DNA of 64,000 bases. Source: Paragordius varius. Taxonomy: Eukaryota > Animalia > Nematomorpha. The notes below the pieces were generated by a model. It saw nothing but the letters and a program-made list of their open reading frames with translations. It ran no database searches and had not been told where the DNA came from. Below, in pieces: positions 133 to 50,884 of this stretch; positions within the stretch are counted from its first letter, which is position 1; the number at the start of each line of letters is the position of its first letter. The position numbers were made by a program, and so were the translations under genes. Location: contig OZ176050.1 in NCBI GenBank assembly GCA_964247055.1, positions 310,001 through 374,000 of the forward strand, in the 5' to 3' direction.

Positions 133-160
133 TATTTTATACGATTTTAAAAATAAAAAT

Positions 161-864: not shown

Positions 865-981
865 TCAAATTTGATCAGGTGATGTCGCCATAATTTTTTT
901 TGGGTAGCCCTATGGTAGTTCCATCATCACTTAAAAAATTTATTTTTTACGATTTTAAAAATAAAAATGGCTACCTAAAAT
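865..981 (+). repeat. Truncated 117-bp monomer (56-bp internal deletion)
   Basis: ccatcatcac|ttaaaaaatttatt at 921-944 skips cccaaatatt...ttaaatat. The monomer starts are at 865 and 982. Confidence 0.92.
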
Positions 982-8500: not shown

Positions 8501-9710
8501 TTATGAATTTTTTAAATATTTAAAAAATTTATTTTATACGATTTTAAAAATAAAAATGGCTACCTAAAATCCAAATTTGATCAGGTGATGTCGCCATAAT
8601 TTTTTTTGGGTAGCCCTATAGTAGTTCCATCATCACCCCAAATATTTTCGAGATCGGAGTATAAATGTAATTTTTATGAATTTTTTAAATATTTAAAAAA
8701 TTTATTTTATACGATTTTAAAAATAAAAATGGCTCCCTAAAATCCAAATTTGATCAGGTGATGTCGCCATAAATTTTTTTTGGGTAGCCCTATGGTAGTT
8801 CCATCATCACCCCAAATATTTTCGAGATCGGAGTATAAATGTAATTTTTATGAATTTTTTAAATATTTAAAAAATTTATTTTATACGATTGTAAAAATAA
8901 AAATGGCTACCTAAAATCCAAATTTGATCAGGTTATGTCGCCATAATTTTTTTTCTGAGCCCTATGGTAGTTCCATCATCACCCCAAATATTGTCGAGAT
9001 CGGAGTATAAATGTAGTTTTTTTGAATTTTTTTAATATTTAAAAAATTTATTTTATACGATTTTAAAAATAAAAATGGCTACCTAAAATCCAAATTTGAT
9101 CAGGTGATGTCGCCATAATTTTTTTAGGTAGGCCTATGATAGTTCCATCATCACCCTAAATATTGTCGAGATCGGACTATAAATGTAATTTTTATGAATT
9201 TTTTAAATATTGAAAAAATTTATTTTATACTATATTAAAAATAAAAATGGCTACCTAAAATCTAAATTTGATCAGGTGATGTCACCATAATTTTTTTTGG
9301 GTAGCCCTATGGTAATTCCATCATCACTTCAAATATTTTCGAGATCGGAGTATAAATGTAATTTCTATGAATTTTTTAAATATTTAAAAAATTTATTTTA
9401 TACGATTTTAAAAATAAAAATGGCTACCTAAAATCCAAATTTGATCAGGTGATGTCACTATAATTTTTTTTGGGTAGCCCTATGGTAGTTCCATCATCAC
9501 CCCAAATATTTTCGAGATCGGAGTATAAATGTAATTTTTATGAATTTTTTAAATATTTAAAAAATTTATTTTATACGATTTTAAAAATAAAAATGGCTAC
9601 CTAAAATCCAAATTTGATCAGGTGATGTCACCATAATTTTTTTTGGGTAGCCCTATGGTAGTTCCATCATCACCCCAAATATTTTGGGGATCGGACTATA
9701 AATGTAATTT
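5510..9710 (+). repeat. 19-monomer-offset duplication (3,281 bp): ~5,510-6,429 repeated at ~8,791-9,710, second copy cut by junction 1
   Basis: Shared rare variants: gattgtaaaa (G at 5,610/8,891), ggttatgtcg, tttttctgagccc, tatactatatt, catcacttcaaat and gtaatttcta. Confidence 0.88.
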
Positions 9711-9725
9711 GATCAAATTTGGATT
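9701..9725. other. Inversion junction 1 (+ to -)
   Basis: aatgtaattt|gatcaaatttgga: a forward monomer cut after gtaattt is joined to a reverse monomer at (t)gatcaaattt. T9710 can belong to either side, and there is no inserted sequence. Confidence 0.96.
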
Positions 9726-12700
9726 TTAGGTAGCCATTTTTATTTTTAAAATCGTATAAAATAAATTTTTTAAATATTTAAAAAATTCATAAAAATTACA
9801 TTTATACTCCGATCTCGAAAATATTTGGGGTGATGATGGAACTACCATAGGGCTGCCCAAAAAAAATTATGGTGACATCACCTGATCAAATTTGGATTTT
9901 AGGTAGCCATTTTTATTTTTAAAATCGTATAAAATAAATTTTTTAAATATTTAAAAAATTCATAAAAATTACATTTATACTCCGATCTCGAAAATATTTG
10001 GGGTGATGATGGAACTACCATAGGGCTACCCAAAAAAAATTATGGTGACATCACCTGATCAAATTTGGATTTTAGGTAGCCATTTTTATTTTTAAAATCG
10101 TATAATATAAATTTTTTAAATATTTAAAAAATTCATAAAAATTACATTTATACTCCGATCTCGAAAATAATTGGGGTGATGATGGAACTACCATAGGGCT
10201 ACCCAAAAAAAATTATGGTGACATCACCTGATCAAATTTGGATTTTAGGTAGCCATTTTTATTTTTAAAATCGTATAAAATAAATTTTTTAAATATTTAA
10301 AAACTTCATAAAAATTACATTTATAGTCCGATCCCCAAAATATTTGGGGTGATGATGGAACTACCATAGGGCTACCCAAAAAAAATTATGACGACATCAC
10401 CTCATCAAATTTGGATTTTAGGTAGCCATTTTTATTTTTAAAATCGTATAAAATAAATTTTTTAAATATTTAAAAAATTCAAAAAAATTACATTTATACT
10501 CCGATCCCCAAAATATTTGGGGTGATGATGGAACTACCATAGGGCTACCCAAAAAAAATTATGACGACATCACCTCATCAAATTTGGATTTTAGGTAGCC
10601 ATTTTTATTTTTAAAATCGTATAAAATAAATTTTTTAAATATTTAAAAAATTCAAAAAAATTACATTTATACTCCGATCTCGAAAATATTTGGGGTGATG
10701 ATGGAACTACCATAGGGCTACCCAAAAAAAATTATGGCGACATCACCTGATCAAATTTGGATTTTAGGTAGCCATTTTTATTTTTAAAATCGTATAAAAT
10801 AAATTTTTTAAATATTTAAAAAATTCAAAAAAATTACATTTATACTCCGATCTCGAAAATATTTGGGGTGATGATGGAACTACCATAGGGCTGCCCAAAA
10901 AAAATTATGGTGACATCACCTGATCAAATTTGGATTTTAGGTAGCCATTTTTATTTTTAAAATCGTATAAAATAAATTTTTTAAATATTTAAAAAATTCA
11001 TAAAAATTACATTTATACTCCGATCTCGAAAATATTTGGGGTGATGATGGAACTACTATAGGGCTACCCAAAAAAAATTATGGCGACATCACCTGATCAA
11101 ATTTGGATTTTAGGTAGCCATTTTTATTTTTAAAATCGTATAAAATAAATTTTTTAAATATTTAAAAACTTCATAAAAATTACATTTATAGTCCGATCCC
11201 CAAAATATTTGGGGTGATGATGGAACTACCATAGGGCTACCCAAAAAAAATTATGACGACATCACCTCATCAAATTTGGATTTTAGGTAGCCATTTTTAT
11301 TTTTAAAATCGTATAAAATAAATTTTTTAAATATTTAAAAAATTCAAAAAAATTACATTTATACTCCGATCTCGAAAATATTTGGGGTGATGATGGAACT
11401 ACCATAGGGCTACCCAAAAAAAATTATGGTGACATCACCTGATCAAATTTGGATTTTAGGTAGCCATTTTTATTTTTAAAATCGTATAAAATAAATTTTT
11501 TAAATATTTAAAAACTTCATAAAAATTACATTTATAGTCCGATCCCCAAAATATTTGGGGTGATGATGGAACTACCATAGGGCTATCCAAAAAAATTATA
11601 GTGACATCACCTGATCAAATTTGGATTTTAGGTAGCCATTTTTATTTTTAAAATCGTATAAAATAAATTTTTTAAATATTTAAAAAATTCATAAAAATTA
11701 CATTTATACTCTGATCTCGAAAATATTTGGGGTGATGATGGAACTACCATAGGGCTACCCAAAAAAAATTATGGTGACATCACCTGATCAAATTTAGATT
11801 TTAGGTAGCCATTTTTTAAAATCGTATAAAATAAATTTTTTAAATATTTAAAAAATTCATAAAAATTACATTTATAGTCCGATCCCCAAAATATTTGGGG
11901 TGATGATGGAACTACCATAGGGCTACCCAAAAATTTTATAGTGACATCACCTGATCAAATTTGGATTTTAGGTAGCCATTTTTATTTTTAAAATCGTATA
12001 AAATAAATTTTTTAAATATTTAAAAAATTCATAAAAATTACATTTATACTCCAATCTCGAAAATATTTGGGGTGATGATGGAACTAACATAGGGCTACCC
12101 AAAAAAAATTATGGTGACATCACCTGATCAAATTTGGATTTTAGGTAGCCATTTTTATTTATAAAATCGTATAAAATAAATTTTTTAAATATTTAAAAAA
12201 TTCATAAAAATTACATTTATACTCCGATCACGAAAATATTTGGGGTGATGATGGAACTAACATAGGGCTACCCAAAAAAAATTATGGTGACATCACCTGA
12301 TCAAATTTGGATTTTAGGTAGCCATTTTTATTTTTAAAATCGTATAAAATAAATTTTTTAAATATTTAAAAAATTCATAAAAATTACATTTATACTCCGA
12401 TCTCGAAAATATTTGGGGTGATGATGGAACTACCATAGGGCTACCCAAAAAAAATTATGGTGATATCACCTGATCAAATTTGGATTTTAGGTAGCCATTT
12501 TTATTTTTAAAATCGTATAAAATAAATTTTTTAAATATTTAAAAAATTCATAAAAATTACATTTATACTCCGATCTCGAAAATATTTGGGGTGATGATGG
12601 AACTACCATAGGGCTACCCAAAAAAAATTATGGCGACATCACCTGATCAAATTTGGATTTTAGGTAGCCATTTTTATTTTTAAAATCGTATAAAATAAAT

Positions 12701-15040
12701 TTTTTAAATATTTAAAAAATTCAAAAAAATTACATTTATACTCCGATCTCGACAATATTTGGGGTGATGATGGAACTACCATAGGGCTACCCAAAAAAAA
12801 TTATGGTGACATCATTTGATCAAATTTGGATTTTAGGTAGCCATTTTTATTTTTAAAATCGTATAAAATAAATTTTTTAAATATTTAAAAAATTCATAAA
12901 AATTACATTTATATTCCGATCTCGAAAATATTTGGGGTGATGATGGAACTACCATAGGGCTACCCAAAAAAAATTATGGTGACATCACCTGATCAAATTT
13001 GGATTTTAGGTAGCCATTTTTATTTTTAAAATCGTATAAAATAAATTTTTTAAATATTTAAAAAATTCCTAAAAATTACATTTATAGTCCGATCCCCAAA
13101 ATATTTGGGGTGATGATGGAACTACCATAGGGCTACGCAAAAAAAAATATGGCGACATCACCTGATCAAATTTGGATTTTAGGTAGCCATTTTTATTTTT
13201 AAAATCGTATAAAATAAATTTTTTAAATATTTAAAAAATTCAAAAAAATTACATTTATAGTCCGATCCCCAAAGTATTCGGGGTGATGATGGAACTACCA
13301 TAGGGCTACCCAAAAAAATTATGGTGACATCACCTGATCAAATTTGGATTTTAGGTAGCCATTTTTATTTTTAAAATCGTATAAAATAAATTTTTTAAAT
13401 ATTTAAAAAATTCATAAAAATTACATTTATACTCCGATCTCGAAAATATTTGGGGTGATGATGGAACTACCATAGGGCTGCCCAAAAAAAATTATGGTGA
13501 CATCACCTGATCAAATTTGGATTTTAGGTAGCCATTTTTATTTTTAAAATCGTATAAAATAAATTTTTTAAATATTTAAAAAATTCATAAAAATTACATT
13601 TATACTCCGATCTCGAAAATATTTGGGGTGATGATGGAACTACCATAGGGCTACCCAAAAAAAATTATGGTGACATCACCTGATCAAATTTGGATTTTAG
13701 GTAGCCATTTTTATTTTTAAAATCGTATAATATAAATTTTTTAAATATTTAAAAAATTCATAAAAATTACATTTATACTCCGATCTCGAAAATAATTGGG
13801 GTGATGATGGAACTACCATAGGGCTACCCAAAAAAAATTATGGTGACATCACCTGATCAAATTTGGATTTTAGGTAGCCATTTTTATTTTTAAAATCGTA
13901 TAAAATAAATTTTTTAAATATTTAAAAACTTCATAAAAATTACATTTATAGTCCGATCCCCAAAATATTTGGGGTGATGATGGAACTACCATAGGGCTAC
14001 CCAAAAAAAATTATGACGACATCACCTCATCAAATTTGGATTTTAGGTAGCCATTTTTATTTTTAAAATCGTATAAAATAAATTTTTTAAATATTTAAAA
14101 AATTCAAAAAAATTACATTTATACTCCGATCCCCAAAATATTTGGGGTGATGATGGAACTACCATAGGGCTACCCAAAAAAAATTATGACGACATCACCT
14201 CATCAAATTTGGATTTTAGGTAGCCATTTTTATTTTTAAAATCGTATAAAATAAATTTTTTAAATATTTAAAAAATTCAAAAAAATTACATTTATACTCC
14301 GATCTCGAAAATATTTGGGGTGATGATGGAACTACCATAGGGCTACCCAAAAAAAATTATGGCGACATCACCTGATCAAATTTGGATTTTAGGTAGCCAT
14401 TTTTATTTTTAAAATCGTATAAAATAAATTTTTTAAATATTTAAAAAATTCAAAAAAATTACATTTATACTCCGATCTCGAAAATATTTGGGGTGATGAT
14501 GGAACTACCATAGGGCTGCCCAAAAAAAATTATGGTGACATCACCTGATCAAATTTGGATTTTAGGTAGCCATTTTTATTTTTAAAATCGTATAAAATAA
14601 ATTTTTTAAATATTTAAAAAATTCATAAAAATTACATTTATACTCCGATCTCGAAAATATTTGGGGTGATGATGGAACTACTATAGGGCTACCCAAAAAA
14701 AATTATGGCGACATCACCTGATCAAATTTGGATTTTAGGTAGCCATTTTTATTTTTAAAATCGTATAAAATAAATTTTTTAAATATTTAAAAACTTCATA
14801 AAAATTACATTTATAGTCCGATCCCCAAAATATTTGGGGTGATGATGGAACTACCATAGGGCTACCCAAAAAAAATTATGACGACATCACCTCATCAAAT
14901 TTGGATTTTAGGTAGCCATTTTTATTTTTAAAATCGTATAAAATAAATTTTTTAAATATTTAAAAAATTCAAAAAAATTACATTTATACTCCGATCTCGA
15001 AAATATTTGGGGTGATGATGGAACTACCATAGGGCTACCC
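9711..15040 (-). repeat. 21-monomer-offset duplication (3,625 bp): 9,711-~11,415 repeated at 13,336-~15,040
   Basis: ggctgccc at 9,851/13,476, plus tataatataa, aaaataattggg, aaaacttcat and atgacgacatcacctcatc in the same order. Confidence 0.88.
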
Positions 15041-17470
15041 AAAAAAAATTATGGCGACATCACCTGATCAAATTTGGATTTTAGGTAGCCATTTTTATTT
15101 TTAAAATCGTATAAAATAAATTTTTTAAATATTTAAAAAATTCAAAAAAATTACATTTATACTCCGATCTCGAAAATATTTGGGGTGATGATGGAACTAC
15201 CATAGGGCTGCCCAAAAAAAATTATGGTGACATCACCTGATCAAATTTGGATTTTAGGTAGCCATTTTTATTTTTAAAATCGTATAAAATAAATTTTTTA
15301 AATATTTAAAAAATTCATAAAAATTACATTTATACTCCGATCTCGAAAATATTTGGGGTGATGATGGAACTACTATAGGGCTACCCAAAAAAAATTATGG
15401 CGACATCACCTGATCAAATTTGGATTTAGGTAGCCATTTTTATTTTTAAAATCGTATAAAATAATATTTTTAAATATTTAAAAAATTCAAAAAAATTACA
15501 TTTATACTCCGATCTCGACAATATTTGGGGTGATGATGGAACTACCATAGGGCTACCCAAAAAAAATTATGGTGACATCACCTGATCAAATTTGGATTTT
15601 AGGTAGCCATTTTTATTTTTAAAATCGTATAAAATAAATTTTTTAAATATTTAAAAACTTCATAAAAATTACATTTATAGTCCGATCCCCAAAATATTCG
15701 GGGTGATGATGGAACTACCATAGGGCTACCCAAAAAAATTATGGTGACATCACCTGATCAAATTTGGATTTTAGGTAGCCATTTTTATTTTTAAAATCGT
15801 ATAAAATAAATTTTTTAAATATTTAAAAAATTCATAAAAATTACAATACTCCGATCTCGAAAATATTTGGGGTGATGATGGAACTACCATAGGGCTACCC
15901 AAAAAAAATTATGGCGACATCACCTGATCAAATTTGGATTTTAGGTAGCCATTTTTATTTTTAAAATCGTATAAAATAAATTTTTTAAATATTTAAAAAA
16001 TTCATAAAAAATACATTTATACTCCGATCTCGAAAATATTTGGGGTGATGATGGAACTACCATAGGGCTACCCAAAAAAAATTATGGTGACATCACCTGA
16101 TCAAATTTGGATTTTAGGTAGCCATTTTTATTTTTAAAATCGTATAAAATAAATTTTTTAAATATTTAAAAAATTCATAAAAATTACATTTATACTCCGA
16201 TCTCGAAAATATTTGGGGTGATGATGGAACTACCATAGGGCTACCCAAAAAAATTATAGTGACATCACCTGATCAAATTTGGATTTTAGGTAGCCATTTT
16301 TATTTTTAAAATCGTATAAAATAAATTTTTTAAATATTTAAAAAATTCATAAAAATTACATTTATACTCTGATCTCGAAAATATTTGGGGTGATGATGGA
16401 ACTACCATAGGGCTACCCAAAAAAAATTATGGTGACATCACCTGATCAAATTTGGATTTTAGGTAGCCATTTTTTAAAATCGTATAAAATAAATTTTTTA
16501 AATATTTAAAAAATTCATAAAAATTACATTTATAGTCCGATCCCCAAAATATTTGGGGTGATGATGGAACTACCATAGGGCTACCCAAAAAAATTATAGT
16601 GACATCACCTGATCAAATTTGGATTTTAGGTAGCCATTTTTATTTTTAAAATCGTATAAAATAAATTTTTTAAATATTTAAAAAATTCATAAAAATTACA
16701 TTTATACTCCGATCTCGAAAATATTTGGGGTGATGATGGAACTAACATAGGGCTACCCAAAAAAAATTATGGTGACATCACCTGATCAAATTTGGATTTT
16801 AGGTAGCCATTTTTATTTATAAAATCGTATAAAATAAATTTTTTAAATATTTAAAAAATTCATAAAAATTACATTTATACTCCGATCTCGAAAATATTTG
16901 GGGTGATGATGGAACTAACATAGGGCTACCCAAAAAAAATTATGGTGACATCACCTGATCAAATTTGGATTTTAGGTAGCCATTTTTATTTTTAAAATCG
17001 TATAAAATAAATTTTTTAAATATTTAAAAAATTCATAAAAATTACATTTATACTCCGATCTCGAAAATATTTGGGGTGATGATGGAACTACCATAGGGCT
17101 ACCCAAAAAAAATTATGGTGATATCACCTGATCAAATTTGGATTTTAGGTAGCCATTTTTATTTTTAAAATCGTATAAAATAAATTTTTTAAATATTTAA
17201 AAAATTCATAAAAATTACATTTATACTCCGATCTCGAAAATATTTGGGGTGATGATGGAACTCCCATAGGGCTACCCAAAAAAAATTATGGCGACATCAC
17301 CTGATCAAATTTGGATTTTAGGTAGCCATTTTTATTTTTAAAATCGTATAAAATAAATTTTTTAAATATTTAAAAAATTCAAAAAAATTACATTTATACT
17401 CCGATCTCGACAATATTTGGGGTGATGATGGAACTACCATAGGGCTACCCAAAAAAAATTATGGTGACAT
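11580..17470 (-). repeat. 27-monomer-offset duplication (4,658 bp): ~11,580-12,810 repeated at ~16,240-17,470
   Basis: ctgatctcg at 11,711/16,369 and atatcacc at 12,463/17,121, plus the 5-bp-deleted gccattttttaaaatc monomer and the aactaacat pair. The left copy has several extra private SNPs. Confidence 0.82.
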
Positions 17471-29920: not shown

Positions 29921-32900
29921 TTTGGGGTGATGATGGAACTACCATAGGGCTACCCAAAAAAAATTATGGTGACATCACCTGATCAAATTTGGATTTTAGG
30001 TAGCCATTTTTATTTTTAAAATCGTATAAAATAAATTTTTTAAATATTAAAAAAATTCAAAAAAACTACATTTATACTCCGATCTCGACAATATTTGGGG
30101 TGATGATGGAACTACCATAGGGCTCAGAAAAAAAATTATGGCGTCATAACCTGATCAAATTTGGATTTTAGGTAGCCATTTTTATTTTTACAATCGTATA
30201 AAATAAATTTTTTAAATATTTAAAAAATTCATAAAAATTACATTTATACTCCGATCTCGACAATATTTGGGGTGATGATGGAACTACCATAGGGCTACCC
30301 AAAAAAAAATATGGTGACATCACCTGATCAAATTTGGATTTTAGGTAGCCATTTTTATTTTTAAAATCGTATAAAATAAATTTTTTAAATATTTAAAAAA
30401 TTCATAAAAATTACATTTATACTCCGATCTCGAAAATATTTGGGGTGATGATGGAACTACCATAGGGCTACCCAAAAAAAATTATGGTGACATCACCTGA
30501 TCAAATTTGGATTTTAGGTAGCCATTTTTATTTTTAAAATCGTATAAAATAAATTTTTTAAATATTAAAAAAATTCAAAAAAACTACATTTATACTCCGA
30601 TCTCGACAATATTTGGGGTGATGATGGAACTACCATAGGGCTCAGAAAAAAAATTATGGCGACATAACCTGATCAGATTTGGATTTTAGGTAGCCATTTT
30701 TATTTTTACAATCGTATAAAATAAATTTTTTAAATATTTAAAAAATTCATAAAAATTACATTTATACTCCGATCTCGACAATATTTGGGGTGATGATGGA
30801 ACTACCATAGGGCTACCCAAAAAAAAATATGGTGACATCACCTGATCAAATTTGGATTTTAGGTAGCCATTTTTATTTTTAAAATCGTATAAAATAAATT
30901 TTTTAAATATTTAAAAAATTCATAAAAATTACATTTATACTCCGATCTCGAAAATATTTGGGGTGATGATGGAACTACCATAGGGCTACCCAAAAAAAAT
31001 TATGGTGACATCACCTGATCAAATTTGGATTTTAGGTAGCCATTTTTATTTTTAAAATCGTATAAAATAAATTTTTTAAATATTAAAAAAATTCAAAAAA
31101 ACTACATTTATACTCCGATCTCGACAATATTTGGGGTGATGATGGAACTACCATAGGGCTCAGAAAAAAAATTATGGCGACATAACCTGATCAAATTTGG
31201 ATTTTAGGTAGCCATTTTTATTTTTACAATCGTATAAAATAAATTTTTTAAATATTTAAAAAATTCATAAAAATTACATTTATACTCCGATCTCGAAAAT
31301 ATTTGGGGTGATGATGGAACTACCATAGGGCTACCCAAAAAAAATTATGGTAACATCAGCTGATCAAATTTGGATTTTAGGTAGCCATTTTTATTTTTAA
31401 AATCGTATAAAATAAATTTTTTAAATATTTAAAAAATTCATAAAAATTACATTTATACTCCGATCTCGAAAATATTTGGGGTGATGATGGAACTACCATA
31501 GGGCTACCCAAAAAAATTATAGTGACATCACCTGATCAAATTTGGATTTTAGGTAGCCATTTTTATTTTTAAAATCGTATAAAATAAATTTTTTAAATAT
31601 ATAAAAAATTCCTAAAAATTACATTTATACTCCGATCTCGAAAATATTTGGGGTGATGATGGAACTACCATAGGGCTACCCAAAAAAATTATAGTGACAT
31701 CACCTGATCAAATTTGGATTTTAGGTAGCCATTTTTATTTTTAAAATCGTATAAAATAAATTTTTTAAATATTTAAAAAATTCCTAAAAATTACATTTAT
31801 AGTCCGATCCCCAAAATATTTGGGGTGATGATGGAACTACCATAGGGCTACCCAAAAAAATTATAGTGACATCACCTGATCAAATTTGGATTTTAGGTAG
31901 CCATTTTTATTTTTAAAATCGTATAAAATAAATTTTTTAAATATTTAAAAAATTCATAGAAATTACATTTATACTCCGATCTCGGAAATATTTCGGGTGA
32001 TGATGGAATTACCATAGGGCTACCCAAAAAAAATTATGGTGACATCACCTGATCAAATTTAGATTTTAGGTAGCCATTTTTATTTTTAATATCGTATAAA
32101 ATAAATTTTTTCAATATTTAAAAAATTCATAAAAATTACATTTATAGTCCGATCTCGACAATATTTAGGGTGATGATGGAACTATCATAGGCCTACCTAA
32201 AAAAATTATGGCGACATCACCTGATCAAATATGGATTTTAGGTAGCCATTTTTATTTTTAAAATCGTATAAAATAAATTTTTTAAATATTTAAAAAATTC
32301 AAAAAAATTACATTTAAAGTCCGATCTCAAAAATATTTGGGGATATGATGGAACTACCATAGGGCTACCCAAAAAAAATTATGGCGACATCACCTGATCA
32401 AATTTGGATTTTAGGTAGCCATTTTTATTTTTAAAATCGTATAAAATAAATTTTTTAAATATTTAAAAAATTCAAAAAAATTACATTTAAAGTCCGATCT
32501 CAAAAATATTTGGGGTGATGATGGATACCATAGGGCTACCCAAAAAAAATTATGGTGACATCACCTGATCAAATTTGGATTTTAGGTAGCCATTTTTATT
32601 TTTAAAATCGTATAAAATAAATTTTTTAAATATTTAAAAAATTCATAAAAATTACATTTATAGTCCGATCTCGAAAATATTTGGGGTGATGATGGAACTA
32701 CCATAGGGCTACCCAAAAAAATTATAGTGACATCACCTGATCAAATTTGGATTTTAGGTAGCCATTTTTATTTTTAAAATCGTATAAAATAAATTTTTTA
32801 AATATTTAAAAAATTCCTAAAAATTACATTTATAGTCCGATCCCCAAAATATTTGGGGTGATGATGGAACTACCATAGGGCTACCCAAAAAAAATTATGG

Positions 32901-35900
32901 TCACATCACCTGATCAAATTTGGATTTTAGGTAGCCATTTTTATTTTTAAAATCGTATAAAATAAATTTTTTAAATATTTAAAAAATTCATAAAAATTAC
33001 ATTTATACTCCGATCTCGAAAATATTTGGGGTGATGATGGAACTACCATAGGGCTACCCAAAAAAATTATAGTGACATCACCTGATCAAATTTGGATTTT
33101 AGGTAGCCATTTTTATTTTTAAAATCGTATAAAATAAATTTTTTAAAAATTTAAAAAATTCATAAAAATTACATTTATACTCCGATCTCGGAAATATTTG
33201 GGGTGATGATGGAACTACCATAGGGCTACCCAAAAAAAATTATGGTGACATCACCTGATCAAATTTGGATTTTAGGTAGCCATTTATATTTTTAAAATCG
33301 TATAAAATAAATTTTTTAAATATTTAAAAAATTCAAAAAAATTACATTTAAAGTCCGATCTCAAAAATATTTGGGGTTATGATGGAACTACCATAGGGCT
33401 ACCCAAAAAAAATTATGGCGACATCACCTTATCAAATTTGGATTTTAGGTAGCCATTTTTATTTTTAAAATCGTATAAAATAAATTTTTTAAATATTTAA
33501 AAAATTCATAAAAATTACATTTATACTCCGATCTCGGAAATATTTCGGGTGATGATGGAATTACCATAGGGCTACCCAAAAAAAATTATGGTGACATCAC
33601 CTGATCAAATTTAGATTTTAGGTAGCCATTTTTATTTTTAATATCGTATAAAATAAATTTTTTCAATATTTAAAAAATTCATAAAAATTACATTTATAGT
33701 CCGATCTCGACAATATTTAGGGTGATGATGGAACTATCATAGGCCTACCTAAAAAAATTATGGCGACATCACCTGATCAAATATGGATTTTAGGTAGCCA
33801 TTTTTATTTTTAAAATCGTATAAAATAAATTTTTTAAATATTTAAAAAATTCATAAAAATTACATTTATAGTCCGATCTCGAAAATATTTGGGGTGATGA
33901 TGGAACTACCATAGGGCTACCCAAAAAAATTATAGTGACATCACCTGATCAAATTTGGATTTTAGGTAGCCATTTTTATTTTTAAAATCGTATAAAATAA
34001 ATTTTTTAAATATTTAAAAAATTCCTAAAAATTACATTTATAGTCCGATCCCCAAAATATTTGGGGTGATGATGGAACTACCATAGGGCTACCCAAAAAA
34101 AATTATGGTCACATCACCTGATCAAATTTGGATTTTAGGTAGCCATTTTTATTTTTAAAATCGTATAAAATAAATTTTTTAAATATTTAAAAAATTCATA
34201 AAAATTACATTTATACTCCGATCTCGAAAATATTTGGGGTGATGATGGAACTACCATAGGGCTACCCAAAAAAATTATAGTGACATCACCTGATCAAATT
34301 TGGATTTTAGGTAGCCATTTTTATTTTTAAAATCGTATAAAATAAATTTTTTAAATATTTAAAAAATTCCTAAAAATTACATTTATACTCCGATCTCGAA
34401 AATATTTGGGGTGATGATGGAACTACCATAGGGCTACCCAAAAAAATTATAGTGACATCACCTGATCAAATTTGGATTTTAGGTAGCCATTTTTATTTTT
34501 AAAATCGTATAAAATAAATTTTTTAAATATTTAAAAAATTCCTAAAAATTACATTTATAGTCCGATCCCCAAAATATTTGGGGTGATGATGGAACTACCA
34601 TAGGGCTACCCAAAAAAATTATAGTGACATCACCTGATCAAATTTGGATTTTAGGTAGCCATTTTTATTTTTAAAATCGTATAAAATAAATTTTTTAAAA
34701 ATTTAAAAAATTCATAAAAATTACATTTATACTCCGATCTCGGAAATATTTGGGGTGATGATGGAACTACCATAGGGCTACCCAAAAAAAATTATGGTGA
34801 CATCACCTGATCAAATTTGGATTTTAGGTAGCCATTTATATTTTTAAAATCGTATAAAATAAATTTTTTAAATATTTAAAAAATTCAAAAAAATTACATT
34901 TAAAGTCCGATCTCAAAAATATTTGGGGTTATGATGGAACTACCATAGGGCTACCCAAAAACAATTATGGCGACATCACCTTATCAAATTTGGATTTTAG
35001 GTAGCCATTTTTATTTTTAAAATCGTATAAAATAAATTTTTTAAATATTTAAAAAATTCATAAAAATTACATTTATACTCCGATCTCGGAAATATTTCGG
35101 GTGATGATGGAATTACCATAGGGCTACCCAAAAAAAATTATGGTGACATCACCTGATCAAATTTAGATTTTAGGTAGCCATTTTTATTTTTAATATCGTA
35201 TAAAATAAATTTTTTCAATATTTAAAAAATTCATAAAAATTACATTTATAGTCCGATCTCGACAATATTTAGGGTGATGATGGAACTATCATAGGCCTAC
35301 CTAAAAAAATTATGGCGACATCACCTGATCAAATATGGATTTTAGGTAGCCATTTTTATTTTTAAAATCGTATAAAATAAATTTTTTAAATATTTAAAAA
35401 ATTCAAAAAAATTACATTTAAAGTCCGATCTCAAAAATATTTGGGGATATGATGGAACTACCATAGGGCTACCCAAAAAAAATTATGGCGACATCACCTG
35501 ATCAAATTTGGATTTTAGGTAGCCATTTTTATTTTTAAAATCGTATAAAATAAATTTTTTAAATATTTAAAAAATTCAAAAAAATTACATTTAAAGTCCG
35601 ATCTCAAAAATATTTGGGGTGATGATGGATACCATAGGGCTACCCAAAAAAAATTATGGTGACATCACCTGATCAAATTTGGATTTTAGGTAGCCATTTT
35701 TATTTTTAAAATCGTATAAAATAAATTTTTTAAATATTTAAAAAATTCATAAAAATTACATTTATAGTCCGATCTCGAAAATATTTGGGGTGATGATGGA
35801 ACTACCATAGGGCTACCCAAAAAAATTATAGTGACATCACCTGATCAAATTTGGATTTTAGGTAGCCATTTTTATTTTTAAAATCGTATAAAATAAATTT

Positions 35901-38900
35901 TTTAAATATTTAAAAAATTCCTAAAAATTACATTTATAGTCCGATCCCCAAAATATTTGGGGTGATGATGGAACTACCATAGGGCTACCCAAAAAAAATT
36001 ATGGTCACATCACCTGATCAAATTTGGATTTTAGGTAGCCATTTTTATTTTTAAAATCGTATAAAATAAATTTTTTAAATATTTAAAAAATTCATAAAAA
36101 TTACATTTATACTCCGATCTCGAAAATATTTGGGGTGATGATGGAACTACCATAGGGCTACCCAAAAAAATTATAGTGACATCACCTGATCAAATTTGGA
36201 TTTTAGGTAGCCATTTTTATTTTTAAAATCGTATAAAATAAATTTTTTAAATATTTAAAAAATTCCTAAAAATTACATTTATATCCCGATCTCGAAAATA
36301 TTTGGGGTGATGATGGAACTACCATAGGGCTACCCAAAAAAATTATAGTGACATCACCTGATCAAATTTGGATTTTAGGTAGCCATTTTTATTTTTAAAA
36401 TCGTATAAAATAAATTTTTTAAATATTTAAAAAATTCCTAAAAATTACATTTATAGTCCGATCCCCAAAATATTTGGGGTGATGATGGAACTACCATAGG
36501 GCTACCCAAAAAAATTATAGTGACATCACCTGATCAAATTTGGATTTTAGGTAGCCATTTTTATTTTTAAAATCGTATAAAATAAATTTTTTAAAAATTT
36601 AAAAAATTCATAAAAATTACATTTATACTCCGATCTCGGAAATATTTGGGGTGATGATGGAACTACCATAGGGCTACCCAAAAAAAATTATGGTGACATC
36701 ACCTGATCAAATTTGGATTTTAGGTAGCCATTTATATTTTTAAAATCGTATAAAATAAATTTTTTAAATATTTAAAAAATTCAAAAAAATTACATTTAAA
36801 GTCCGATCTCAAAAATATTTGGGGTTATGATGGAACTACCATAGGGCTACCCAAAAAAAATTATGGCGACATCACCTTATCAAATTTGGATTTTAGGTAG
36901 CCATTTTTATTTTTAAAATCGTATAAAATAAATTTTTTAAATATTTAAAAAATTCATAAAAATTACATTTATAGTCCGATCCCCAAAATATTTGGGGTGA
37001 TGATGGAACTACCATAGGGCTACCCAAAAAAAATTATGGTGACATCACCTGATCAAATTTGGATTTTAGGTAGCCATTTTTATTTTTAAAATCGTATAAA
37101 ATAAATTTTTTAAATATTTAAAAAATTCATAAAAATTACATTTATACTCCGATCTCGAAAATATTTGGGGTGATGATGGATACCATAGGGCTACCCAAAA
37201 AAAATTATGGTGACATCACCTGATCAAATTTGGATTTTAGGTAGCCATTTTTATTTTTAAAATCGTATAAAATAAATTTTTTAAATATTTAAAAAATTCA
37301 TAAAAATTACATTTATAGTCCGATCTCGAAAATATTTGGGGTGATGATGGAACTACCATAGGGCTACCCAAAAAAATTATAGTGACATCACCTGATCAAA
37401 TTTGGATTTTAGGTAGCCATTTTTATTTTTAAAATCGTATAAAATAAATTTTTTAAATATTTAAAAAATTCCTAAAAATTACATTTATAGTCCGATCCCC
37501 AAAATATTTGGGGTGATGATGGAACTACCATAGGGCTACCCAAAAAAAATTATGGTCACATCAGCTGATCAAATTTGGATTTTAGGTAGCCATTTTTATT
37601 TTTAAAATCGTATAAAATAAATTTTTTAAATATTTAAAAAATTCATAAAAATTACATTTATATTCCGATCCCCAAAATATTTGGGGTGATGATGGAACTA
37701 CCATAGGGCTACCCAAAAAAATTATAGTGACATCACCTGATCAAATTTGGATTTTAGGTAGCCATTTTTATTTTTAAAATCGTATAAAATAAATTTTTTA
37801 AATATTTAAAAAATTCCTAAAAATTACATTTATAGTCCGATCCCCAAAATATTTGGGGTGATGATGGAACTACCATAGGGCTACCCAAAAAAATTATAGT
37901 GACATCACCTGATCAAATTTGGATTTTAGGTAGCCATTTTTATTTTTAAAATCGTATAAAATAAATTTTTTAAAAATTTAAAAAATTCATAAAAATTACA
38001 TTTATACTCCGATCTCGGAAATATTTGGGGTGATGATGGAACTACCATAGGGCTACCCAAAAAAAATTATGGTGACATCACCTGATCAAATTTGGATTTT
38101 AGGTAGCCATTTATATTTTTAAAATCGTATAAAATAAATTTTTTAAATATTTAAAAAATTCAAAAAAATTACATTTAAAGTCCGATCTCAAAAATATTTG
38201 GGGTTATGATGGAACTACCATAGGGCTACCCAAAAAAAATTATGGCGACATCACCTTATCAAATTTGGATTTTAGGTAGCCATTTTTATTTTTAAAATCG
38301 TATAAAATAAATTTTTTAAATATTTAAAAAATTCATAAAAATTACATTTATAGTCCGATCTCGAAAATATTTGGGGTGATGATGGAACTACCATAGGGCT
38401 ACCCAAAAAAATTATAGTGACATCACCTGATCAAATTTGGATTTTAGGTAGCCATTTTTATTTTTAAAATCGTATAAAATAAATTTTTTAAATATTTAAA
38501 AAATTCCTAAAAATTACATTTATAGTCCGATCCCCAAAATATTTGGGGTGATGATGGAACTACCATAGGGCTACCCAAAAAAAATTATGGTCACATCACC
38601 TGATCAAATTTGGATTTTAGGTAGCCATTTTTATTTTTAAAATCGTATAAAATAAATTTTTTAAATATTTAAAAAATTCATAAAAATTACATTTATACTC
38701 CGATCTCGAAAATATTTGGGGTGATGATGGAACTACCATAGGGCTACCCAAAAAAATTATAGTGACATCACCTGATCAAATTTGGATTTTAGGTAGCCAT
38801 TTTTATTTTTAAAATCGTATAAAATAAATTTTTTAAATATTTAAAAAATTCCTAAAAATTACATTTATACTCCGATCTCGAAAATATTTGGGGTGATGAT

Positions 38901-41900
38901 GGAACTACCATAGGGCTACCCAAAAAAATTATAGTGACATCACCTGATCAAATTTGGATTTTAGGTAGCCATTTTTATTTTTAAAATCGTATAAAATAAA
39001 TTTTTTAAATATTTAAAAAATTCCTAAAAATTACATTTATAGTCCGATCCCCAAAATATTTGGGGTGATGATGGAACTACCATAGGGCTACCCAAAAAAA
39101 ATTATGGCGACATCACCTGATCAAATTTGGATTTTAGGTAGCCATTTTTATTTTTAAAATCGTATAAAATAAATTTTTTAAATATTTAAAAAATTCAAAA
39201 AAATTACATTTATACTCCGATCTCGACAATATTTGGGGTGATGATGGAACTACCATAGGGCTACCCAAAAAAAATTATGGGGACATCACCTGATCAAATT
39301 TGGATTTTAGGTAGCCATTTTTATTTTTAAAATCGTATAAAATAAATTTTTTAAATATTAAAATTCAAAAAAATTACATTTATACTCCGATCTCGACAAT
39401 ATTTGCGGTGATGATGGAACTACCATAGGGCTACCCAAAAAAAAATATGGTGACATCACCTGATCAAATTTGGATTTTAGGTAGCCATTTTTATTTTTAA
39501 AATCGTATAAAATAAATTTTTTAAATATTTAAAAAATTCATAAAAATTACATTTATACTCCGATCTCGAAAATATTTGGGGTGATGATGGAACTACCATA
39601 GGGCTACCCAAAAAAAATTATGGTGACATCACCTGATCAAATTTGGATTTTAGGTAGCCATTTTTATTTTTAAAATCGTATAAAATAAATTTTTTAAATA
39701 TTAAAAAAATTCAAAAAAACTACATTTATACTCCGATCTCGACAATATTTGGGGTGATGATGGAACTACCATAGGGCTCAGAAAAAAAATTATGGCGACA
39801 TAACCTGATCAAATTTGGATTTTAGGTAGCCATTTTTATTTTTACAATCGTATAAAATAAATTTTTTAAATATTTAAAAAATTCATAAAAATTACATTTA
39901 TACTCCGATCTCGACAATATTTGGGGTGATGATGGAACTACCATAGGGCTACCCAAAAAAAAATATGGTGACATCACCTGATCAAATTTGGATTTTAGGT
40001 AGCCATTTTTATTTTTAAAATCGTATAAAATAAATTTTTTAAATATTTAAAAAATTCATAAAAATTACATTTATACTCCGATCTCGAAAATATTTGGGGT
40101 GATGATGGAACTACCATAGGGCTACCCAAAAAAAATTATGGTGACATCACCTGATCAAATTTGGATTTTAGGTAGCCATTTTTATTTTTAAAATCGTATA
40201 AAATAAATTTTTTAAATATTAAAAAAATTCAAAAAAACTACATTTATACTCCGATCTCGACAATATTTGGGGTGATGATGGAACTACCATAGGGCTCAGA
40301 AAAAAAATTATGGCGACATAACCTGATCAGATTTGGATTTTAGGTAGCCATTTTTATTTTTACAATCGTATAAAATAAATTTTTTAAATATTTAAAAAAT
40401 TCATAAAAATTACATTTATACTCCGATCTCGACAATATTTGGGGTGATGATGGAACTACCATAGGGCTACCCAAAAAAAAATATGGTGACATCACCTGAT
40501 CAAATTTGGATTTTAGGTAGCCATTTTTATTTTTAAAATCGTATAAAATAAATTTTTTAAATATTTAAAAAATTCATAAAAATTACATTTATACTCCGAT
40601 CTCGAAAATATTTGGGGTGATGATGGAACTACCATAGGGCTACCCAAAAAAAATTATGGTGACATCACCTGATCAAATTTGGATTTTAGGTAGCCATTTT
40701 TATTTTTAAAATCGTATAAAATAAATTTTTTAAATATTAAAAAAATTCAAAAAAACTACATTTATACTCCGATCTCGACAATATTTGGGGTGATGATGGA
40801 ACTACCATAGGGCTCAGAAAAAAAATTATGGCGACATAACCTGATCAAATTTGGATTTTAGGTAGCCATTTTTATTTTTACAATCGTATAAAATAAATTT
40901 TTTAAATATTTAAAAAATTCATAAAAATTACATTTATACTCCGATCTCGAAAATATTTGGGGTGATGATGGAACTACCATAGGGCTACCCAAAAAAAATT
41001 ATGGTAACATCAGCTGATCAAATTTGGATTTTAGGTAGCCATTTTTATTTTTAAAATCGTATAAAATAAATTTTTTAAATATTTAAAAAATTCATAAAAA
41101 TTACATTTATACTCCGATCTCGAAAATATTTGGGGTGATGATGGAACTACCATAGGGCTACCCAAAAAAATTATAGTGACATCACCTGATCAAATTTGGA
41201 TTTTAGGTAGCCATTTTTATTTTTAAAATCGTATAAAATAAATTTTTTAAATATATAAAAAATTCCTAAAAATTACATTTATACTCCGATCTCGAAAATA
41301 TTTGGGGTGATGATGGAACTACCATAGGGCTACCCAAAAAAATTATAGTGACATCACCTGATCAAATTTGGATTTTAGGTAGCCATTTTTATTTTTAAAA
41401 TCGTATAAAATAAATTTTTTAAATATTTAAAAAATTCCTAAAAATTACATTTATAGTCCGATCCCCAAAATATTTGGGGTGATGATGGAACTACCATAGG
41501 GCTACCCAAAAAAATTATAGTGACATCACCTGATCAAATTTGGATTTTAGGTAGCCATTTTTATTTTTAAAATCGTATAAAATAAATTTTTTAAATATTT
41601 AAAAAATTCATAGAAATTACATTTATACTCCGATCTCGGAAATATTTCGGGTGATGATGGAATTACCATAGGGCTACCCAAAAAAAATTATGGTGACATC
41701 ACCTGATCAAATTTAGATTTTAGGTAGCCATTTTTATTTTTAATATCGTATAAAATAAATTTTTTCAATATTTAAAAAATTCATAAAAATTACATTTATA
41801 GTCCGATCTCGACAATATTTAGGGTGATGATGGAACTATCATAGGCCTACCTAAAAAAATTATGGCGACATCACCTGATCAAATATGGATTTTAGGTAGC

Positions 41901-44900
41901 CATTTTTATTTTTAAAATCGTATAAAATAAATTTTTTAAATATTTAAAAAATTCAAAAAAATTACATTTAAAGTCCGATCTCAAAAATATTTGGGGATAT
42001 GATGGAACTACCATAGGGCTACCCAAAAAAAATTATGGCGACATCACCTGATCAAATTTGGATTTTAGGTAGCCATTTTTATTTTTAAAATCGTATAAAA
42101 TAAATTTTTTAAATATTTAAAAAATTCAAAAAAATTACATTTAAAGTCCGATCTCAAAAATATTTGGGGTGATGATGGATACCATAGGGCTACCCAAAAA
42201 AAATTATGGTGACATCACCTGATCAAATTTGGATTTTAGGTAGCCATTTTTATTTTTAAAATCGTATAAAATAAATTTTTAAATATTTAAAAAATTCATA
42301 AAAATTACATTTATAGTCCGATCTCGAAAATATTTGGGGTGATGATGGAACTACCATAGGGCTACCCAAAAAAATTATAGTGACATCACCTGATCAAATT
42401 TGGATTTTAGGTAGCCATTTTTATTTTTAAAATCGTATAAAATAAATTTTTTAAATATTTAAAAAATTCCTAAAAATTACATTTATAGTCCGATCCCCAA
42501 AATATTTGGGGTGATGATGGAACTACCATAGGGCTACCCAAAAAAAATTATGGTCACATCACCTGATCAAATTTGGATTTTAGGTAGCCATTTTTATTTT
42601 TAAAATCGTATAAAATAAATTTTTTAAATATTTAAAAAATTCATAAAAATTACATTTATACTCCGATCTCGAAAATATTTGGGGTGATGATGGAACTACC
42701 ATAGGGCTACCCAAAAAAATTATAGTGACATCACCTGATCAAATTTGGATTTTAGGTAGCCATTTTTATTTTTAAAATCGTATAAAATAAATTTTTTAAA
42801 AATTTAAAAAATTCATAAAAATTACATTTATACTCCGATCTCGGAAATATTTGGGGTGATGATGGAACTACCATAGGGCTACCCAAAAAAAATTATGGTG
42901 ACATCACCTGATCAAATTTGGATTTTAGGTAGCCATTTATATTTTTAAAATCGTATAAAATAAATTTTTTAAATATTTAAAAAATTCAAAAAAATTACAT
43001 TTAAAGTCCGATCTCAAAAATATTTGGGGTTATGATGGAACTACCATAGGGCTACCCAAAAAAAATTATGGCGACATCACCTTATCAAATTTGGATTTTA
43101 GGTAGCCATTTTTATTTTTAAAATCGTATAAAATAAATTTTTTAAATATTTAAAAAATTCATAAAAATTACATTTATACTCCGATCTCGGAAATATTTCG
43201 GGTGATGATGGAATTACCATAGGGCTACCCAAAAAAAATTATGGTGACATCACCTGATCAAATTTAGATTTTAGGTAGCCATTTTTATTTTTAATATCGT
43301 ATAAAATAAATTTTTTCAATATTTAAAAAATTCATAAAAATTACATTTATAGTCCGATCTCGACAATATTTAGGGTGATGATGGAACTATCATAGGCCTA
43401 CCTAAAAAAATTATGGCGACATCACCTGATCAAATATGGATTTTAGGTAGCCATTTTTATTTTTAAAATCGTATAAAATAAATTTTTTAAATATTTAAAA
43501 AATTCATAAAAATTACATTTATAGTCCGATCTCGAAAATATTTGGGGTGATGATGGAACTACCATAGGGCTACCCAAAAAAATTATAGTGACATCACCTG
43601 ATCAAATTTGGATTTTAGGTAGCCATTTTTATTTTTAAAATCGTATAAAATAAATTTTTTAAATATTTAAAAAATTCCTAAAAATTACATTTATAGTCCG
43701 ATCCCCAAAATATTTGGGGTGATGATGGAACTACCATAGGGCTACCCAAAAAAAATTATGGTCACATCACCTGATCAAATTTGGATTTTAGGTAGCCATT
43801 TTTATTTTTAAAATCGTATAAAATAAATTTTTTAAATATTTAAAAAATTCATAAAAATTACATTTATACTCCGATCTCGAAAATATTTGGGGTGATGATG
43901 GAACTACCATAGGGCTACCCAAAAAAATTATAGTGACATCACCTGATCAAATTTGGATTTTAGGTAGCCATTTTTATTTTTAAAATCGTATAAAATAAAT
44001 TTTTTAAATATTTAAAAAATTCCTAAAAATTACATTTATACTCCGATCTCGAAAATATTTGGGGTGATGATGGAACTACCATAGGGCTACCCAAAAAAAT
44101 TATAGTGACATCACCTGATCAAATTTGGATTTTAGGTAGCCATTTTTATTTTTAAAATCGTATAAAATAAATTTTTTAAATATTTAAAAAATTCCTAAAA
44201 ATTACATTTATAGTCCGATCCCCAAAATATTTGGGGTGATGATGGAACTACCATAGGGCTACCCAAAAAAATTATAGTGACATCACCTGATCAAATTTGG
44301 ATTTTAGGTAGCCATTTTTATTTTTAAAATCGTATAAAATAAATTTTTTAAAAATTTAAAAAATTCATAAAAATTACATTTATACTCCGATCTCGGAAAT
44401 ATTTGGGGTGATGATGGAACTACCATAGGGCTACCCAAAAAAAATTATGGTGACATCACCTGATCAAATTTGGATTTTAGGTAGCCATTTATATTTTTAA
44501 AATCGTATAAAATAAATTTTTTAAATATTTAAAAAATTCAAAAAAATTACATTTAAAGTCCGATCTCAAAAATATTTGGGGTTATGATGGAACTACCATA
44601 GGGCTACCCAAAAACAATTATGGCGACATCACCTTATCAAATTTGGATTTTAGGTAGCCATTTTTATTTTTAAAATCGTATAAAATAAATTTTTTAAATA
44701 TTTAAAAAATTCATAAAAATTACATTTATACTCCGATCTCGGAAATATTTCGGGTGATGATGGAATTACCATAGGGCTACCCAAAAAAAATTATGGTGAC
44801 ATCACCTGATCAAATTTAGATTTTAGGTAGCCATTTTTATTTTTAATATCGTATAAAATAAATTTTTTCAATATTTAAAAAATTCATAAAAATTACATTT

Positions 44901-47313
44901 ATAGTCCGATCTCGACAATATTTAGGGTGATGATGGAACTATCATAGGCCTACCTAAAAAAATTATGGCGACATCACCTGATCAAATATGGATTTTAGGT
45001 AGCCATTTTTATTTTTAAAATCGTATAAAATAAATTTTTTAAATATTTAAAAAATTCAAAAAAATTACATTTAAAGTCCGATCTCAAAAATATTTGGGGA
45101 TATGATGGAACTACCATAGGGCTACCCAAAAAAAATTATGGCGACATCACCTGATCAAATTTGGATTTTAGGTAGCCATTTTTATTTTTAAAATCGTATA
45201 AAATAAATTTTTTAAATATTTAAAAAATTCAAAAAAATTACATTTAAAGTCCGATCTCAAAAATATTTGGGGTGATGATGGATACCATAGGGCTACCCAA
45301 AAAAAATTATGGTGACATCACCTGATCAAATTTGGATTTTAGGTAGCCATTTTTATTTTTAAAATCGTATAAAATAAATTTTTTAAATATTTAAAAAATT
45401 CATAAAAATTACATTTATAGTCCGATCTCGAAAATATTTGGGGTGATGATGGAACTACCATAGGGCTACCCAAAAAAATTATAGTGACATCACCTGATCA
45501 AATTTGGATTTTAGGTAGCCATTTTTATTTTTAAAATCGTATAAAATAAATTTTTTAAATATTTAAAAAATTCCTAAAAATTACATTTATAGTCCGATCC
45601 CCAAAATATTTGGGGTGATGATGGAACTACCATAGGGCTACCCAAAAAAAATTATGGTCACATCACCTGATCAAATTTGGATTTTAGGTAGCCATTTTTA
45701 TTTTTAAAATCGTATAAAATAAATTTTTTAAATATTTAAAAAATTCATAAAAATTACATTTATACTCCGATCTCGAAAATATTTGGGGTGATGATGGAAC
45801 TACCATAGGGCTACCCAAAAAAATTATAGTGACATCACCTGATCAAATTTGGATTTTAGGTAGCCATTTTTATTTTTAAAATCGTATAAAATAAATTTTT
45901 TAAATATTTAAAAAATTCCTAAAAATTACATTTATATCCCGATCTCGAAAATATTTGGGGTGATGATGGAACTACCATAGGGCTACCCAAAAAAATTATA
46001 GTGACATCACCTGATCAAATTTGGATTTTAGGTAGCCATTTTTATTTTTAAAATCGTATAAAATAAATTTTTTAAATATTTAAAAAATTCCTAAAAATTA
46101 CATTTATAGTCCGATCCCCAAAATATTTGGGGTGATGATGGAACTACCATAGGGCTACCCAAAAAAATTATAGTGACATCACCTGATCAAATTTGGATTT
46201 TAGGTAGCCATTTTTATTTTTAAAATCGTATAAAATAAATTTTTTAAAAATTTAAAAAATTCATAAAAATTACATTTATACTCCGATCTCGGAAATATTT
46301 GGGGTGATGATGGAACTACCATAGGGCTACCCAAAAAAAATTATGGTGACATCACCTGATCAAATTTGGATTTTAGGTAGCCATTTATATTTTTAAAATC
46401 GTATAAAATAAATTTTTTAAATATTTAAAAAATTCAAAAAAATTACATTTAAAGTCCGATCTCAAAAATATTTGGGGTTATGATGGAACTACCATAGGGC
46501 TACCCAAAAAAAATTATGGCGACATCACCTTATCAAATTTGGATTTTAGGTAGCCATTTTTATTTTTAAAATCGTATAAAATAAATTTTTTAAATATTTA
46601 AAAAATTCATAAAAATTACATTTATAGTCCGATCCCCAAAATATTTGGGGTGATGATGGAACTACCATAGGGCTACCCAAAAAAAATTATGGTGACATCA
46701 CCTGATCAAATTTGGATTTTAGGTAGCCATTTTTATTTTTAAAATCGTATAAAATAAATTTTTTAAATATTTAAAAAATTCATAAAAATTACATTTATAC
46801 TCCGATCTCGAAAATATTTGGGGTGATGATGGATACCATAGGGCTACCCAAAAAAAATTATGGTGACATCACCTGATCAAATTTGGATTTTAGGTAGCCA
46901 TTTTTATTTTTAAAATCGTATAAAATAAATTTTTTAAATATTTAAAAAATTCATAAAAATTACATTTATAGTCCGATCTCGAAAATATTTGGGGTGATGA
47001 TGGAACTACCATAGGGCTACCCAAAAAAATTATAGTGACATCACCTGATCAAATTTGGATTTTAGGTAGCCATTTTTATTTTTAAAATCGTATAAAATAA
47101 ATTTTTTAAATATTTAAAAAATTCCTAAAAATTACATTTATAGTCCGATCCCCAAAATATTTGGGGTGATGATGGAACTACCATAGGGCTACCCAAAAAA
47201 AATTATGGTCACATCAGCTGATCAAATTTGGATTTTAGGTAGCCATTTTTATTTTTAAAATCGTATAAAATAAATTTTTTAAATATTTAAAAAATTCATA
47301 AAAATTACATTTA
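29630..47313 (-). repeat. ~8.0-kb near-identical segmental duplication: ~29,630-37,660 and ~39,284-47,313 (offset 9,654/9,653, ~56 monomers)
   Basis: Markers checked at the same offset: 29,701/39,355, 30,123/39,777, 31,351/41,005, 31,601/41,255, 34,962/44,615, 36,281/45,934, 37,178/46,831 and 37,551/47,204. Confidence 0.92.
29800..31300 (-). repeat. 3-monomer higher-order repeat (period 518 bp), three copies; repeated at ~39,450-40,950
   Basis: The ggctcagaaaaaaaa monomer has its C at 30,123, 30,641 and 31,159, each with aaaaactaca, cataacc and ttttacaatc. Confidence 0.9.
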
Positions 47314-47974
47314 TAGTCCGATCCCCAAAATATTTGGGGTGATGATGGAACTACCATAGGGCTACCCAAAAAAAATTATGGTGACATCACCTGATCAAAT
47401 TTGGATTTTAGGTAGCCATTTTTATTTTTAAAATCGTATAAAATAAATTTTTTAAATATTTAAAAAATTCATAAAAATTACATTTATATTCCGATCCCCA
47501 AAATATTTGGGGTGATGATGGAACTACCATAGGGCTACCCAAAAAAATTATAGTGACATCACCTGATCAAATTTGGATTTTAGGTAGCCATTTTTATTTT
47601 TAAAATCGTATAAAATAAATTTTTTAAAAATTTAAAAAATTCATAAAAATTACATTTATACTCCGATCTCGAAAATATTTGGGGTGATGATGGAACTACC
47701 ATAGGGCTACCCAAAAAAAATTATGGTGACATCACCTGATCAAATTTGGATTTTAGGTAGCCATTTATATTTTTAAAATCGTATAAAATAAATTTTTTAA
47801 ATATTTAAAAAATTTAAAAAAATTACATTTAAAGTCCGATCTCAAAAATATTTAGGGTTATGATGGAACTACCATAGGGCTACCCAAAAAAAATTATGGC
47901 GACATCACCTTATCAAATTTGGATTTTAGGTAGCCATTTTTATTTTTAAAATCGTATAAAATAAATTTTTTAAA

Positions 47975-48000
47975 TATTTAAAAAATTGATGTCACCATAA
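47975..48000. other. Inversion junction 2 (- to +)
   Basis: ...tatttaaaaaatt|gatgtcaccataa: a reverse monomer cut after aaaaaatt is joined to a forward monomer at (t)gatgtcacc. T47987 can belong to either side. Confidence 0.96.
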
Positions 48001-50725: not shown

Positions 50726-50884
50726 CCAAATTTGATCAGGTGATGTCACTATAATTTTTTAACTATGGTAGTTCCATCATCACCCCAAATACTTTGGGGA
50801 TCGGACTATAATTTTTATGAATTTTTTTAATATTTAAAAAATTTATTTTATACGATTTTAAAAATAAAAATGGCTACCTAAAAT
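50726..50884 (+). repeat. Degenerate 159-bp monomer (net -8 and -6 bp indels)
   Basis: ataattttttaactatgg replaces ataattttttttgggtagccctatgg, and ggactataatttttatg replaces ggactataaatgtaatttttatg. The monomer starts are at 50,726 and 50,885. Confidence 0.88.

Follow-up and report, generated by a model that had tools for sequence, protein, structure and literature searches.

The window examined here, a 64-kb stretch of the Paragordius varius genome (contig OZ176050.1, hereafter C1, positions 310,001–374,000), was drawn from a 110.6-Mb assembly of 44 contigs and is filled from end to end by a 173-bp satellite. The monomers are 172–173 bp long and AT-rich (26% G+C), and randomly chosen ones are 96.5% identical to one another. 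Within this array lies a single block of satellite in reverse orientation, and it is this block and its two junctions that we describe. Positions are those of the window unless prefixed with C1. To the window we added 200 kb of upstream sequence, which gave a contiguous array of 264 kb (C1:110,001–374,000) with 1,291 forward and 217 reverse monomers. The reverse monomers form one block at C1 319,711–357,987, corresponding to 9,711–47,987 of the window. Across the 264 kb there are no N bases, no intervals between anchor motifs longer than 400 bp, and no gaps of non-satellite sequence, and no open reading frame (ORF) of 70 amino acids or more was found anywhere in the window.

Anchor-motif mapping and Tandem Repeats Finder (TRF) placed the changes of orientation exactly between 9,710 and 9,711 and between 47,987 and 47,988, and the AT skew changes sign at both. 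Exactly two switches thus bound the block, the sole reversed block in the 264 kb. Outside it, orientation is uniform for at least 210 kb leftward and, rightward, to the window end and in sampled stretches up to 50 kb beyond, where the array is known from seven 3-kb sample loci. An earlier note on this DNA had reported two orientation switches and had stated that reverse-complementing 9,711–47,987 restores one forward array. Both statements held: the switches could be placed to the base, and turning the block back recovered monomer phase at both joins. The layout of the window is as follows.

1–9,710, plus strand: left flank (L), forward satellite, stopping after consensus position 116 (...AATGTAATTT)
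9,711–47,987, minus strand: inverted block (M), 38,277 bp, with 217 anchored monomers in reverse
47,988–64,000, plus strand: right flank (R), forward array
9,706–9,715, no strand: junction J1 (9,710/9,711), head-to-head, ...GTAATTT/GATCAAATTT..., with the T at 9,710 ambiguous
47,983–47,992, no strand: junction J2 (47,987/47,988), tail-to-tail, ...AAAAAATT/GATGTCACC..., with the T at 47,987 ambiguous

The consensus monomer was numbered from its GGCTACC anchor. At breakpoint 1, L stops after position 116 and the reverse-complemented block, rc(M), starts again at position 122, so that TTATG is absent. At breakpoint 2, rc(M) stops after position 25 and R starts again at position 30, so that AGGT is absent. 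Both restored joins have an anchor spacing of 168 bp and are in phase apart from these 5 and 4 lost bases, a net loss of 9 bp over both breakpoints with zero bases inserted at J1 or J2. At each junction, one T can be assigned to either side, in agreement with the 1-bp overlap without insertion that had been described at 9,710 and 47,987. The missing motifs had been given earlier as “ttatg” and “gg”; these are the same as TTATG and AGGT, the ambiguous bases having been counted on both sides.

In their present state, the two joins are 91 bp out of monomer phase and share no homology. The chance that an unrelated second switch would fit both phases within ±5 bp is about (11/173)^2, or 0.4%. The junction k-mers TAATTTGATCAAATTTGG and AAAAAATTGATGTCACC each occur once in the 110.6-Mb assembly, and the 1-kb junction sequences of J1 and J2 gave no other spanning match.

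Intact copies of both breakpoint sites

The new result of this analysis is that the array retains intact, uninverted copies of both breakpoint sites. Two segments of the array, each at least 91 kb long, form a direct segmental duplication: P (C1:171,000–262,000) and P′ (C1:311,500–408,400), with an identity of ~99.9% (about 0.5–1 substitution per kb). P′, in which the block lies, reaches C1 408 kb or beyond, and its match to P runs as far as C1 262 kb. When the window was tiled against the 264 kb, P, which lies ~137–160 kb upstream and is not inverted, proved near-identical to the end of L, to the whole block, and to R. The four ends created by the inversion map to P (C1 coordinates) as follows.

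Left flank end: P 180,782
Far end of block: P 180,788, reverse strand
Near end of block: P 222,112, reverse strand
Right flank start: P 222,117

Each breakpoint is therefore one point of P, without 180,783–180,787 (TTATG) in the first case and 222,113–222,116 (AGGT) in the second. Over ±500 bp, the restored joins matched P at 999/1000 and 1000/1000 bases, with the 5-bp and 4-bp gaps as the only interruptions. An intact copy of site 1 lies at C1 315,930–316,934 (5,930–6,934 of the window), and intact copies of site 2 lie at P 221,613–222,616 and, on the minus strand, at 12,832–13,835 within a repeat unit of the block itself; all three show 0 mismatches to the restored join over the same ±500 bp. 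The two copies within the window belong to the following features.

5,491–7,204, plus strand: E1, intact uninverted breakpoint 1, with TTATG at 6,430–6,434 and 0 mismatches to the restored join
11,516–15,139, minus strand: D1, a complete 3,624-bp (21-monomer) unit in the block, with ACCT (AGGT read on the opposite strand) at 13,332–13,335

As a null, we built 600 chimeras, each from two array positions chosen at random, in phase and 38–42 kb apart. For none of the 600 was there a paralogue within 5 mismatches per kb (minimum 6, median 32), while 18% of truly contiguous 1-kb windows have a paralogue with at most 1 mismatch. Against this null, the restored joins with 0 mismatches behave like true former neighbors.

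The correspondence extends through the interior of the block. rc(M) is collinear with P 180,788–222,112, with 15 mismatches in 30,114 bp. There are three exceptions: 9,654 bp are duplicated in tandem, ~16.5 kb are deleted (P 193,829 to 210,308), and 21 monomers are duplicated. The right flank differs from P by 10 substitutions in 11,559 bp, and its first 5.3 kb match P 222,117–227,447 with 7 mismatches.

Origin of the inversion

We consider it very probable that the block arose through a single two-break inversion rejoined by end-joining. One chromatid of a uniformly oriented 173-bp array would have been broken at two points 38,286 bp apart, the first in the AT-rich part of the monomer, after ...AATGTAATTT, and the second in the TGATCAGGTGATG part of a monomer lying ~221 units farther along. 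The fragment would then have been rejoined in reverse by non-homologous end-joining (NHEJ), with 5 bp and 4 bp lost, no filler, and an overlap of at most 1 bp. The lesions were presumably double-strand breaks repaired by classical NHEJ, and the event probably took place in the germ line. At the junctions, we found no inverted homology flanking the block, no transposon, no target-site duplication, and no filler. A 1-bp overlap is about what chance would give in sequence of 74% A+T, so that classical NHEJ fits and microhomology-mediated end-joining (MMEJ) is left without positive support. The earlier proposal of one two-break inversion repaired by NHEJ or MMEJ thus stands as regards the inversion, given the reciprocal junctions, the intact sites, and the collinearity of P, and as regards NHEJ; its MMEJ option gained nothing.

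Three points weigh against this account. J1 and J2 are read from the assembly, and the near-identity of P and P′ means that the assembler was working in very repetitive sequence. Two junctions cannot separate classical NHEJ from alternative end-joining.

The first two of these points bear on an artefact of assembly or library, in which the block was mis-oriented or the junctions came from chimeric molecules, and the DNA of the animal was not inverted. The region is indeed extremely repetitive: kilobase blocks that are 100% identical are numerous. Forward satellite does not overlap with reverse satellite, however, so the assembler would have needed real reads of each junction, and the assembled stretch contains no N. 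A chimera caused by fold-back or a missed adapter yields a single, perfectly palindromic junction, whereas here there are two different, non-palindromic junctions, 38 kb apart and reciprocal to the base. M also has private substitutions and block rearrangements and is not, therefore, a misplaced copy of P. That reciprocity makes a fold-back or misassembly unlikely had already been argued; the argument is a good one, resting on two non-palindromic reciprocal junctions, but it is indirect, and we leave an artefact a small share of the probability.

It is likewise unlikely, in our view, that the assembler placed both haplotypes of one locus in tandem as P and P′, in which case the inversion would be real and heterozygous. 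P and P′ differ by ~0.06% plus block indels, as allelic satellite arrays do, and the left edge of P′ (C1 ~311.5–314.5 kb) falls in a very homogeneous sub-array with a period of 1,896 bp, in which reads could conceivably have been overlapped falsely. Yet ~49 kb of other array (C1 262–311 kb) separates P from P′, and intact copies of both sites lie within P′ itself (E1, D1, and C1 385.7–388.8 kb), which shows paralogy within one molecule either way.

Still less probable is a one-step, replication-based rearrangement, by fork stalling and template switching or by microhomology-mediated break-induced replication, in which P was copied piecewise and its middle from the opposite strand. Such a process would account for a block and two flanks that are all near-identical to an upstream segment, and short junction overlaps are what it predicts. 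It would, however, need three switches, two of them returning within 4–5 bp of earlier exits. Template switching typically leaves duplications or triplications, whereas here a net 9 bp was lost and nothing was duplicated at the joins. Moreover, P′ gained tandem duplications of different ages before the flip, so that duplication and inversion were separate in time.

Non-allelic homologous recombination between pre-existing inverted repeats, or a transposon-mediated inversion, is barely conceivable: these are common causes of inversions elsewhere and nothing specific speaks for them here, whereas the array is uniformly oriented outside the block, the joins are 91 bp out of phase without shared homology, and the window holds neither non-satellite sequence nor a target-site duplication, and none of its ORFs reaches 70 amino acids.

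Two further candidates were rejected. A fold-back inverted duplication would make the two sides of the junction mirror images, and they are not: the L end finds its best inverted match at 96.7% identity, which equals background, and the start of M best matches P and D1 rather than the L end. A staggered-break event with inverted duplication was suggested by an apparent 3.6-kb overlap, on the coordinates of P, between the start of M and the start of R. Base-level extension resolved this overlap into a 3,624-bp tandem duplicate that already existed and was split by the break. The start of M fits P to 222,112 and the start of R fits P from 222,117, and these are complementary halves, not copies.

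Relative age and neighboring duplications

The favored two-break inversion can be ordered relative to the duplications around it. Within the segmental duplication (at least 91 kb), several blocks of 3.6 to 27 kb have been duplicated or deleted, which has altered its structure. In the ~47 kb compared, there were at least 6 block rearrangements against ~30 substitutions, and block turnover in the duplicated segment is far faster than point mutation. Besides D1, which lies whole within the block, the following duplicated units adjoin the junctions.

9,711–11,514, minus strand: D2-left, 1,804 bp, left part of the tandem twin of D1 (D2), adjoining J1, with 1 mismatch to D1
47,988–49,803, plus strand: D2-right, 1,816 bp, right part of that twin, adjoining J2, with 0 mismatches to D1
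39,825–47,987, minus strand: second copy of the 9,654-bp tandem duplication, with 7 mismatches in 8,163 bp to the first copy at 30,171–38,333

D2 was cut by the second break: 1,804 bp, 4 lost bases, and 1,816 bp together make 3,624 bp, the length of D1, and D1 and D2 differ at 1 of 3,620 bases. At the other end of the block, the first copy of the 9,654-bp duplication is followed at 38,334–38,338 by CATAA; on the opposite strand this reads TTATG, the motif lost at breakpoint 1. Beyond the window, an extra forward copy of D1 lies at C1 385,693–388,786, 100% identical to D1 over 3,094 bp and in inverted orientation relative to it.

Unequal exchange makes only direct copies, so duplicates that now stand in opposite orientations must predate the flip. 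By this reasoning, the forward copy of D1 at C1 385,693–388,786 makes a ~27-kb duplication older than the flip. The inversion is later than the segmental duplication of at least 91 kb, the ~27-kb tandem duplication, and the almost undiverged 21-monomer duplication. As the split D2 differs from D1 at a single base, the inversion would be very young. It is probably among the youngest events of the array and evolutionarily very recent, possibly still polymorphic. A more tentative idea, to which we give roughly one chance in four, is that it still segregates and has split the array into non-exchanging domains; the sequenced animal may even be heterozygous for it, the upstream “paralogue” then being the standard haplotype.

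Other irregularities of the array were also recorded. Truncated monomers of 152 bp recur, recognizable by an anchor spacing of 325 bp, and mark a duplicated unit of ~24.7 kb; their spacing in the inverted block seems to be the mirror image of that in the right flank. Their positions are as follows.

Minus strand, window: 17,486; 19,366; 21,420; 22,436; 25,009
Plus strand, window: 57,094; 59,315; 62,233; 63,249
Further copies: C1 206,503–217,795

One monomer of 117 bp, at 852–969, has a 56-bp internal deletion (...CCATCATCAC/TTAAAAAATTT...) and is unique in the 264 kb; it is another out-of-register join within the array. It was considered as the boundary of the large duplication and rejected as such, since both sides of it match the local array, and the boundary lies ~0.5–1 kb to its right. 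Between 1,400 and 4,600 (C1 311,400–314,600) is a very homogeneous sub-array with a period of 1,896 bp (11 monomers). It contains several 100%-identical kilobase copies and resembles a higher-order repeat (HOR), and assembly overlaps could be ambiguous there.

The 173-bp satellite also lies near one end of at least five large contigs, with uniform orientation in every sampled stretch; the stretches sampled on C1 and on the contig labeled C3 below run in one orientation throughout. Its locations are as follows.

C1: to ~1.02 Mb
C2: 177–374 kb
C3: 13.5–13.9 Mb
C4: 14.05–14.14 Mb
C5: ~114 kb

This placement near one end of at least five contigs suggests a subterminal or centromere-type array common to the chromosomes.

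Known parallels and consequences

A literature search with the monomer sequence gave no match in searchable papers, and nothing relevant was found on nematomorph satellites. The rearrangement itself is of an already known kind; what we describe is an unusually well-resolved case, in an unstudied satellite. In human CEN1, strand switches and a polymorphic megabase inversion have been reported inside an active alpha-satellite HOR array (bioRxiv 10.64898/2026.07.22.740206). The two cases share paired strand switches, breakpoints that both lie in one homogeneous satellite array, and structurally neutral content. The CEN1 inversion is ~1.4 Mb, with breakpoints not base-resolved in that text, whereas the one described here is 38 kb, with both breakpoints base-resolved and, unlike in CEN1, with the ancestral sites recovered from copies in the same array; the organisms and satellites are unrelated.

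In maize CEN10, a hemicentric inversion split the CentC array, and Wolfgruber et al. (2016, as summarized in PMC8997354) ascribed it to microhomology-mediated end-joining. There as here, an inversion that interrupts a satellite array is put down to error-prone end-joining and not to unequal exchange. In the maize case, one of the breaks is outside the array, with involvement of retrotransposons, whereas in our case both breakpoints fall in pure array with a 1-bp overlap.

Inversions of the Drosophila type, as Ranz and colleagues are said to have set out in 2007, arise from staggered breaks and carry inverted duplications at both ends. The inversion in P. varius resembles these in having two breaks and no repeats at the breakpoints. 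In the staggered-break model, however, the same segment is duplicated immediately beside both junctions, whereas here the junctions hold complementary halves with 4–5 bp lost, and the nearby inverted copy (D1 versus D2-right) is there because of an earlier tandem duplication.

The inversion is without coding content, and its structural effect is to create two array-scale inverted-repeat boundaries. On general recombination logic, these boundaries should block in-register unequal exchange across them, and exchange between block and flank would now be expected to yield further inversions or dicentric products. At J1, a 386-nt stretch across the junction folds at −166 kcal/mol (z = −30). Rfam returned matches near J1 (9,584–9,863, both strands) to plant miRNA-precursor families, all of them sub-threshold, such as MIR7533 with 89 bits against a gathering score of 230. 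These sub-threshold hairpin matches arise because the inversion junction makes a long inverted repeat, or hairpin, at J1, and plant miRNA hairpins were accordingly rejected as an artefact of the junction.

The biological surprise is small, and we regard this as an exceptionally clean case of modest interest. Inversions in satellite arrays are now visible in complete assemblies, but their breakpoints are rarely base-resolved because the monomers look alike. The unique junction k-mers can serve directly as markers, both to verify the assembly and to genotype other individuals. As the junctions and their ancestral sites are all readable here, the array offers direct evidence that end-joining, besides unequal exchange, reshapes satellite arrays. 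The flip also gives neighboring duplications a relative order in time, as repeats with copies in opposite orientation on its two sides must be older than it is. If it does still segregate, the inversion would be a natural time-stamp for the rates of block duplication and point mutation in this satellite.

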